Source: Podarcis muralis
Taxonomy: Eukaryota
Reading direction: 5' to 3'
Assembly (NCBI RefSeq): GCF_964188315.1
Contig: NC_135656.1
Location: 116,622,001-116,686,000 of the forward strand
Length of the DNA stretch: 64,000 nt
Of this stretch, positions 46,123 through 46,845 are shown one piece after another. Position 1 is the first letter of the stretch; every line of letters begins with the position of its first letter. The translations under genes were made by a program, and so were the position numbers. Below the pieces are notes generated by a model that did no database searches, was not told the origin of the DNA, and saw only the letters and a list, made by a program, of their open reading frames with translations.

Positions 46123-46845
46123 ATGTGCGAGGCGGCGCGCGAGGGTCCGGCAGACGCCGTGCGGCGCTTCTTGCGGGAGCATCCCGCGCTGCGCCTCCTG
46201 CCTGCGGGGGACAGAGTCCGCTGCGCCCTGACCGGCCACGAGCTGCCCTGCCGGCTGCCGGAGCTCCAGGCCTACACGAATGGCAAGAAGTACTCTCGGC
46301 TGGTCCGGGCGGCCGGGGCGCTGGACTACGGCGAGTACGGGCCGCACATCGTGCCCAGCACCAAAAACCCCGCGCAGCTCTTCTGCAAGCTCACCCTCCG
46401 CCACATCAACAGGATCCCGGCGCACGTCCTGCGCCACGTGCAAGGCCGGCGCTATCAGAAGGCGCTGAGACGGTACGAAGAATGCGAGAAGGAGGGCACG
46501 AAGTACGTCCCCGCCTGCTTGCTCCGGAAGCCCCGTGCCGCCCGGGAGGATCCACCGGCAGGGATCCACCGGCAGTCCGATCGGAAGGGATCCTGGGAGC
46601 ACCCGTCCAGCAGCGAGAGCAGCGGAACGGACGACAGCATGAGCGACTTGTACCCGCCTGAGCTTTTCCCGCAGAAAAACCCAGCAGCCAAGGGAAGGAG
46701 CAGCGACCGAGAGGTGGCAGAGCCAGCGGCGGATAAAAGTGTCGCGGGGGGAGAGAGAGGGGATCCCATGGAGGTGGATTTGCAAGCAGGCACCAAAAGG
46801 GCAAAGAGACAAGCAGGCCCCCGCAAGAAGAAGTTCAAAAGTTGA
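46123..46845 (+). CDS. SURF2: Surfeit locus protein 2, intronless (retrogene-like), 240 aa
   Basis: [12 protein letters not shown]...[28 protein letters not shown]...[39 protein letters not shown]...YVPACL...[13 protein letters not shown]...KKKFKS matches SURF2 as I recall it. Single uninterrupted ORF with gccATGt start. Confidence 0.93.

Follow-up and report, generated by a model that had tools for sequence, protein, structure and literature searches.

A single-exon SURF2 in a zinc-finger cluster of Podarcis muralis: a probable orphan retrogene of lacertid lizards

The SURF2 gene and its surroundings

A stretch of 64,000 nucleotides of the Podarcis muralis genome (RefSeq assembly GCF_964188315.1, contig NC_135656.1, positions 116,622,001–116,686,000, forward strand), hereafter the window, was analysed with regard to an intact open reading frame (ORF) for SURF2. 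The frame runs from ATG to TGA at 46123–46845 of the plus strand over 240 codons, with zero stops and zero frameshifts. Its product matched the Pfam profile PF05477 (SURF2) with 272 bits and an E value of 5.1e-81, against a curated cut-off of 25 bits, and residues 12–240 aligned with positions 3–238 of the 242 of the profile. The coding sequence (CDS) has a G+C content of 66% and an observed/expected (o/e) CpG ratio of 0.91. In 200-nt bins spanning 46001–46800, the respective values were 0.62–0.73 and 0.77–1.03, compared with a CpG o/e of 0–0.3 in the surrounding DNA. The frame sits inside a SCAN/KRAB/C2H2 zinc-finger cluster, with SCAN and C2H2 exons as neighbours, and no other surfeit gene was found within the 64-kb window. 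The first-pass annotation, made from the sequence of the window, had reported a single 723-nt ORF across the SURF2 domain without introns, stops or frameshifts, together with abundant CpG and zinc-finger rather than surfeit neighbours, and all of this was borne out. The two features concerned are:

46123–46845, plus strand: SURF2 CDS, a single exon of 240 codons, from the Pfam SURF2 match and the presence of the protein in a public collection
46001–46800, no strand assigned: CpG island covering the promoter-proximal leader and nearly the whole CDS, from 200-nt bins

A processed copy of a six-exon gene

The canonical gene was reconstructed from five squamates, namely Rhineura floridana, Varanus komodoensis, Hemicordylus capensis, Elgaria multicarinata and Tiliqua scincoides. 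It spans 5–8 kb, in a head-to-head arrangement with SURF1 and with SURF4 next on the other side, and it comprises six coding exons in all five species, with exons 2 and 3 invariably of 155 and 104 nt. The multi-exon, head-to-head arrangement that the first-pass annotation had given for vertebrates thus holds in the squamates examined, and an intronless ancestral state of squamate SURF2 is ruled out because six exons lie between SURF1 and SURF4 in these five species. The gene of the window departs from this layout in being single-exon and away from both SURF1 and SURF4. The ancestral exon junctions, derived by hand from the exon maps of the canonical genes and protein alignments, fall at 46215/46216, 46370/46371, 46474/46475, 46630/46631 and 46806/46807, and the ORF is contiguous through all five of the corresponding intron positions. 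The 3′ end of the copy, including the parental 3′ untranslated region (3′UTR), contains the following features:

46843–46845, plus strand: stop codon TGA, derived from a conserved TGG (Trp), from alignment of the last exon and 3′UTR with five canonical genes
46846–46963, plus strand: dead CDS tail and parental 3′UTR, from local alignment to the parental last exon and 3′UTR
46964–46990, plus strand: A-rich tract AAAAAAAACCCAAAACCCCCAAAAA, ~90–110 nt past the old stop

The protein ends at KKKFKS, 15 residues short of the canonical squamate proteins, which end in ...KKKFKSWNRKPKSFGKAVSGK. The missing residues are explained by a TGG-to-TGA nonsense change at the stop codon, as seen in the alignment of AGT TGA AAT CGG in the window with AGT TGG AAC AGG in Varanus. 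The change is common to three Podarcis species, and the Zootoca protein terminates at the same place. Beyond the new stop, remnants of the last 15 codons are still legible despite a 9–10-nt deletion, and the old TAG has become GAG at ~46876–46878. The length noted in the first-pass annotation was therefore right, and the shortness is derived rather than ancestral. This tail aligned with the parental last exon and 3′UTR with z scores over shuffled sequences of 10.0 (Varanus), 7.9 (Rhineura) and 6.9 (Elgaria). Homology reaches ~120 nt beyond the stop and fades at the A-rich tract, near the place matching the parental AATAAA, which in Varanus and Rhineura follows the stop at a distance of ~125 nt. 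The tract is short, interrupted by C and of variable length among Podarcis species, and it is probably the decayed poly(A) tail of the retrocopy. The earlier statement that neither a poly(A) tract nor a target-site duplication could be recognised was thus too strong as to the former; as to the latter, it stands. The window SURF2 is a processed copy of a spliced mRNA.

Just upstream of the copied unit, the segment 45640–45735 resembles the A/T-rich tail of a squamate short interspersed element (SINE; ...GGGCAGTATACAAATTTAATCAATGACAATAAAC) and may mark or mask the original insertion junction. Within the part of the CDS that encodes the disordered region, an exact 14-nt tandem duplication (two copies of GGATCCACCGGCAG) occurs at 46548–46575 and is likewise present in Zootoca at the protein level. 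As 14 is not a multiple of three, it requires compensation nearby, and it may account for the stretch DPPAGIHRQ being unalignable to canonical SURF2.

The carried-over leader

Homology to the parent extends ~385 nt upstream of the ORF, into what was the SURF1–SURF2 intergenic promoter. The features of this region are:

45738–45781, plus strand: 5′-most block of the copied unit, from blastn against the ancestral loci
45804–45899, plus strand: (ATC)n/(ATT)n microsatellite in the leader, repeat family D1
45895–46122, plus strand: parental 5′ leader, the former SURF1–SURF2 bidirectional promoter region, from alignment to parental upstream DNA
45959–45973, plus strand: GCCCCGCATATGGCG with a YY1-like ATGGCG core, identical at 15 of 15 positions in the SURF1–SURF2 intergenic region of Rhineura
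45991–45999, plus strand: CCGGAAGTG, an ETS-like motif, collinear as CCGAAAGTG or CCAGAAGTG in Rhineura, Elgaria and Varanus
46063–46068, plus strand: GATTGG, an inverted CCAAT box within CTGATTGGCTGC, collinear upstream of canonical SURF2

The outermost block matched the ancestral locus of P. raffonei at 82% over 44 nt (positions 9854–9897 of the fetched piece; E 1.7e-6) and that of Zootoca at 87% over 31 nt. It is collinear with the next block and corresponds to intergenic DNA ~100–150 nt from the SURF1 ATG, so that the copied RNA would have begun close to SURF1 and spanned most of the shared promoter. The microsatellite differs in length among Podarcis species, and a short ATC/ATT-rich stretch (CATCATTATC...CATTATTA) occupies the matching place at the ancestral locus. 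In a semi-global alignment with the 270 nt upstream of the Rhineura SURF2 ATG, the 228-nt leader attained a z score of 13.0 over shuffled sequences, which was the best match and equal to comparisons between parental genes. Its part 45920–46023 matched the relic found beside SURF1 in Podarcis, Zootoca and Lacerta (see below) at 76–80% over ~100 nt, with E values of 1e-15 to 4e-21. Overall identity of the leader was 74–80% to the lacertid relics versus 66–70% to Rhineura, and leader and relic share derived insertions that Rhineura and Elgaria lack.

The three conserved motifs are putative YY1, ETS and NF-Y sites. The YY1-like block is preserved in the three lacertid relics apart from one or two changes, and its first 13 of 15 positions are identical in Elgaria. 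Around the CCAAT box, TGATTGGC(T/C)GC is collinear upstream of SURF2 in Varanus, Tiliqua and Hemicordylus and takes a degenerate form in Rhineura and Elgaria. The carried-over leader would putatively act as the present promoter of the retrogene. A short upstream ORF (uORF) of 11 codons (ATGGCGCAGGTG...TGA) lies at 45967–46002 with its ATG within the YY1-like motif; this ATGGCG is kept in Rhineura and in the relics of Podarcis and Zootoca beside SURF1. Whether the uORF is present in the mature mRNA depends on the exact transcription start. A minus-strand ORF at 45642–46124 (160 residues, starting MAAV) was rejected as a gene, as it is the antisense of leader and microsatellite and had zero supporting reads. 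The RefSeq model of SURF2 in P. raffonei comprises 280 residues owing to a species-specific upstream ATG (GTTGATGGATGCC versus GTTGACGGGTGCC in the window), which adds 40 codons (10001–10120 of the fetched locus); this longer model is probably an annotation artefact.

The parental locus in lacertids

Lacertid SURF1 proteins were found with a stop-free stretch of the Tiliqua SURF1 gene, and the corresponding loci were taken from P. raffonei, Zootoca vivipara and Lacerta agilis. All three carry SURF1 and RPL7A, with no gene called in the 10 kb upstream of SURF1. The retrogene of P. raffonei resides on a chromosome of 127 Mb, and SURF1/RPL7A on another of 51 Mb. In Lacerta, a laminin-N/EGF (netrin-like) gene replaces SURF4 and is located 10 kb upstream of SURF1, by which the Surfeit cluster is seen to be broken right at the dead SURF2. 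A search with the canonical SURF2 profile of six-frame translations of the three gap-free loci returned nothing better than E 0.099, whereas the same search in Varanus as a control recovered six of six exons, with E values from 1.5e-31 to 8.6e-6. Weak plus-strand SURF2-like matches 1.2–1.5 kb upstream of SURF1 in P. raffonei (8499–8765, E 0.38) and Lacerta (8419–8580, E 0.14) were dismissed as noise, as they are absent in Zootoca.

At the expected place and strand, a relic of the parent was found in nucleotide comparisons. It consists of the ~100-nt leader stretch, 250–420 nt from the SURF1 ATG and with the same end point in the three genera, and, immediately adjoining it, the 3′ half of exon 1 including its GT donor; for this half, z reached up to 10 in comparisons with canonical exon 1. 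The CCAAT box, the ATG and the first 15–20 codons are missing owing to a deletion of ~150 nt, and exons 2–6 were undetectable in these loci. In place of the G-K-K of canonical genes, the remaining exon 1 has derived G-D-x codons, which the retrogene shares. These codons and the shared derived indels indicate that the copy was made from a parent of the lacertid lineage after the split from Rhineura, the timing being taken from the leader indels and not from a protein tree. As read from these sequences, the death of the parent would precede the divergence of Podarcis, Zootoca and Lacerta.

No canonical lacertid SURF2 protein was present among the matches listed from a collection of 5.8 billion proteins. 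When this collection was searched with a teiid SURF2, the lacertid cluster ranked 57th at 59% identity, below birds, while other squamates were 65–76% identical to the query. The retrogene appears to be the only working SURF2 of lacertids. Public annotations name it SURF2 in P. raffonei and Zootoca and "SURF2-like" in P. muralis. Zootoca further has a second "SURF1-like" protein of 244 residues, which is encoded on a separate, small scaffold (a 9.3-Mb contig), falls in the same 90% cluster as SURF1 and could be a duplicate, a haplotig or a sex-chromosome copy.

Transcription

Retrogene sequence was contained in 12 RNA runs of P. muralis, from seven samples and three studies, and in two runs of a relative. 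Two stranded bulk RNA sequencing (RNA-seq) runs were mapped over 43800–49700. Both gave a depth of 20–65 on one strand only from ~46164 to 47345; the first mate mapped to the minus strand, which corresponds to plus-strand RNA under the usual stranded protocols. Depth was zero over 44982–45966 and near zero after 47543, and no splice joints were found in the gene. An RNA contig of the second species covers 46179–46882 with 17 substitutions and no indel within the CDS. Downstream of the A-rich tract, the transcript includes one further feature:

46991–47330, plus strand: host-derived 3′UTR extension, from RNA-seq depth and an AATAAA scan

Depth remained at 15–48 up to 47345 and then fell to 2–7. 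The only AATAAA is found at 47304–47309 and the transcript ends nearby, having read through the old poly(A) relic into host DNA. The retrogene thus gives rise to a discrete, unspliced plus-strand transcript of ~1.2 kb. A SINE-like segment (GGGATGATGGGAACTGTAGTCC) is present in inverted copies at ~47012–47040, within the 3′UTR, and at 47450–47510, just beyond it; these two copies explain the many "opposite strands" joints and the two-strand coverage in the RNA reads.

Conservation, selection and protein features

The same single-exon gene with the same zinc-finger neighbours was found in P. raffonei and P. lilfordi. A 90% protein cluster unites P. muralis (240 residues), P. raffonei, P. lilfordi and Zootoca vivipara (239 residues), and the frame is open in five species, i.e. 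four of Podarcis plus Zootoca. Zootoca lacks one codon, and the CDS of the five lacertid proteins is otherwise uniform in length. Of 85 alignment columns at least 90% conserved in 34 non-lacertid tetrapods, 80 are kept, and the otherwise conserved positions altered in all lacertids are E73G, E100A, Q122E, F157S and P160H. The 48 invariant columns include C34, H39, C88, H94 and D171–P178, and the motif DSMSDLYP is retained. The lacertid protein is 59–63% identical to other squamate SURF2 proteins, with 72–74% identity in the structured domain. In a protein tree, the five lacertid sequences formed a fully supported clade within Squamata, with a stem of 0.46 changes per site and a very short crown.

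Non-synonymous (dN) and synonymous (dS) divergence and their ratio (ω) were estimated from a codon alignment with five canonical genes. The lacertid lineage yielded dN 0.175, dS 0.58 and ω 0.30, with ω 0.20 in the structured domain, compared with dN 0.04–0.08 and ω 0.09–0.17 along the five canonical lineages; as dS between families is near saturation (proportion of synonymous differences 0.5–0.6), these ω values are approximate. On these estimates, the lacertid SURF2 protein has evolved two to four times faster than the canonical ones, yet under purifying selection. Within Podarcis, the CDS shows 1.7–1.8% substitutions and zero indels versus 4.5–6.2% and ~8–13 indels per kb in the flanks. This comparison and the lineage estimates were used in place of pairwise dN/dS ratios within the genus, which are based on 12–19 changes and range from 0.36 to 1.6.

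Human SURF2 is a partner of the free 5S ribonucleoprotein (RNP) and an antagonist of MDM2; RPL5 and RPL11 of this free RNP are bound by its structured domain, residues 1–136, and the remainder of the protein is disordered (PMC11436901). The lacertid split at residue 135 matches this domain boundary, and binding of RPL5 and RPL11 would presumably be retained by the lizard protein.

Interpretation and alternative explanations

We consider it very likely that the gene of the window is an orphan retrogene, i.e. the working SURF2 of lacertid lizards, whose parent is dead. The first-pass annotation had envisaged an old retrocopy kept open by selection, which was either a second copy or a relocated replacement, and the replacement is now favoured by the dead parent, the lineage ω of ~0.3 and the transcription. 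The pseudogene signature that it had named as contrary evidence was not encountered: the lineage ratio is ~0.3 rather than ~1, the gene is transcribed and disabling mutations were not seen in the Podarcis and Zootoca orthologues. Nor is squamate SURF2 ancestrally intronless, as the squamate parent has six exons, and the suggested check for a spliced copy next to SURF1 revealed only a truncated parental relic there in P. raffonei, Zootoca and Lacerta.

Three other explanations were weighed. A functional retrogene might coexist with an intact parental SURF2 that moved away with SURF4 in a rearrangement that broke the cluster, as the disrupted SURF1–SURF2–SURF4 synteny of lacertids, the laminin-N/EGF gene 10 kb upstream of SURF1 in Lacerta and the "SURF2-like" label in P. 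muralis might suggest. However, what is left of the leader and exon 1 is still located next to SURF1 and lacks the ATG, which means that the parent was broken in place. In addition, no canonical lacertid SURF2 is found among the listed proteins even though four annotated lacertid genomes contribute the retrogene product, and two of the annotations, those of P. raffonei and Zootoca, call the retrogene itself SURF2. We thus regard an intact parent elsewhere as very improbable. A transcribed processed pseudogene, with its frame open by chance or through slow mutation of a CpG island and without a functional protein, is less probable still. It would fit the pairwise dN/dS range within Podarcis and the excess of dN over dS in the C-terminal half, the C-terminus cut by a nonsense mutation, and the CDS synonymous divergence below that of the flanks, which is compatible with a low local mutation rate. 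It is difficult to reconcile with ω values of 0.30 overall and 0.20 in the structured domain at a lineage dS of ~0.58, with the retention of 80 of 85 conserved positions, and with 723 nt free of stops and frameshifts that differ by a single codon in Zootoca, when the Podarcis flanks have accumulated 8–13 indels per kb. Moreover, with the parent dead, lacertids would be left with no SURF2 at all.

The last alternative, a move at the DNA level, would entail either prior loss of the introns at the ancestral locus or duplication of a segment and later precise deletion of its introns. The ~385 nt of upstream intergenic and promoter sequence carried along, which is unusual for retrocopies, and the lack of a visible target-site duplication speak for it. 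Against these stand five precisely missing introns, homology that stops with the parental 3′ end, beside an A-rich tract, and a relic that keeps the exon 1 donor GT and intron sequence, by which the parent still had introns at its death. The upstream extent, too, halts ~100 nt before the SURF1 ATG, which fits a transcript starting in the bidirectional promoter near the SURF1 start; closely spaced SURF1 and SURF2 starts are known in mammals. A DNA-level move is hence the least probable of the three, with hardly any weight.

Several observations count against the orphan-retrogene explanation or narrow its basis. In the disordered half (codons 136–240, 46528–46842), 6–10 non-synonymous versus 0–1 synonymous differences separate the Podarcis species, so that this half may be near neutral; the structured half shows the reverse, with 1–2 versus 1–7 differences, and the counts of both halves are too small for a test. 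The protein tree leaves the placement of lacertids within squamates undecided, with a weak pairing with Sceloporus; this pairing was not used because it joins two long branches and is probably due to long-branch attraction. A structure model from the 34-sequence alignment was of moderate confidence, with a mean predicted local distance difference test (pLDDT) score of 57.8 and values of 84–89 for residues 10–65. RNA-seq depth is very low over 45967–46163, so that the transcription start is only roughly placed, downstream of the carried-over motifs, and inclusion of the ATG at 46123 in the mature mRNA is assumed. GC-rich 5′ ends are commonly under-covered in RNA-seq. Evidence for a genome-wide absence of an intact parent comes from protein sets derived from annotations and from the 10 kb upstream of SURF1. 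The evidence from Lacerta agilis concerns the dead parent only, the retrogene being known from Podarcis and Zootoca. Finally, a search for direct repeats flanking 45738 and 46990 found no convincing target-site duplication, only repeats at chance level, a loss that is expected for an insertion older than the split between Podarcis and Zootoca.

Proposed history

Under the orphan-retrogene explanation, the events would be placed on the lacertid stem, later than the divergence from the amphisbaenian Rhineura lineage and earlier than that among Podarcis, Zootoca and Lacerta. The starting point would have been a fully spliced SURF2 mRNA whose long 5′ leader spanned most of the SURF1–SURF2 bidirectional promoter; reverse transcription and insertion would have placed its copy within a SCAN/KRAB zinc-finger cluster of a different chromosome. 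With YY1-like, ETS-like and CCAAT elements in its leader, the copy may have arrived with a usable CpG-island promoter, and its present mRNA is unspliced, ~1.2 kb long and ended by a downstream host AATAAA. The parental gene presumably died after the copying, an order of events that we infer, and left behind a leader fragment together with the 3′ half of its first exon, splice donor included. The protein kept its structured N-terminal domain and lost its last 15, basic residues through the nonsense mutation.

A more far-reaching version holds that a retrogene equipped with its own bidirectional-promoter leader allowed the otherwise highly stable Surfeit cluster to break between SURF1 and SURF2, and that the burst of protein change on the stem reflects a changed function in nucleolar-stress signalling through 5S RNP/MDM2-p53 and not just relaxation. 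It points to the five substitutions at near-invariant sites and the loss of the basic 15-residue tail, and we consider it rather unlikely.

Other features of the window

SCAN-domain exons were found at 900–1748 on the minus strand and at 7941–8888, 22286–23275 and 36818–37522 on the plus strand. C2H2 finger exons are located at 11402–12301, 26189–27115 and 40867–42171 (plus) and at 50765–52906 (minus), the last with ~18 fingers. The SCAN/C2H2 array at 185–42171 and 50765–52906 is typical of the squamate SCAN/KRAB-ZNF expansion.

Relation to known systems and significance

The Surfeit locus is a textbook case of a tight and deeply conserved gene cluster, in which unrelated housekeeping genes share bidirectional promoters. 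Compared with the canonical vertebrate protein, lacertid SURF2 has the same succession of a structured domain of ~135 residues, a disordered acidic and serine-rich region with a conserved motif, and a basic, KR-rich end, but it is encoded by a single exon away from SURF1 and SURF4, has lost the last 15 residues and is changed at five conserved positions.

Orphan retrogenes have been described in mammals, an example being the replacement of RNF113 (Ciomborowska et al. 2013, PMC3548309; Carelli et al. 2016, PMC4772013). The lizard gene resembles them as an intronless copy of a multi-exon parent lost in the same lineage, with expression from a CpG island and purifying selection. It differs in belonging to squamates and to the Surfeit cluster, and in that the dead parent is recognisable in place by its leader and half of exon 1. 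The promoter of lizard SURF2 seemingly stems from the parent. In most mammalian cases, by contrast, a promoter arose or was recruited at the new site, and nine of ten orphan retrogenes gained CpG-island promoters (Carelli et al., PMC4772013). Inheritance of the parental promoter via an upstream transcription start was reported for ~3% of expressed retrocopies (Carelli et al. 2016, Fig. 2A, PMC4772013). As in those retrocopies, the copied RNA holds parental sequence upstream of promoter-proximal elements, and the transcript appears to start downstream of them; unlike in others, the piece carried along is most of a bidirectional promoter shared with SURF1, although the promoter is putative and the start roughly placed. 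A literature search found no paper linking SURF2 with retrogenes or lizards. The gene itself is already annotated publicly as SURF2 or SURF2-like; what is new is a well-supported orphan retrogene of which both the live copy and the dead parent are visible.

One member of the Surfeit cluster would thus have been replaced by an RNA-derived copy on another chromosome throughout a lizard lineage, with the dead parent still visible. As orphan retrogenes are few and those described almost all mammalian, a squamate case is useful, and the promoter elements of the retrogene allow a direct comparison with the relic, which continues to serve SURF1. For annotation, it follows that lacertid "SURF2" or "SURF2-like" is not the positional orthologue of SURF2 in other vertebrates. 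Finally, lacertids would provide a natural experiment on SURF2, whose part in regulating the 5S RNP–MDM2–p53 axis has been recognised recently: the structured domain was held constant, and the disordered half and tail were free to change or to disappear.

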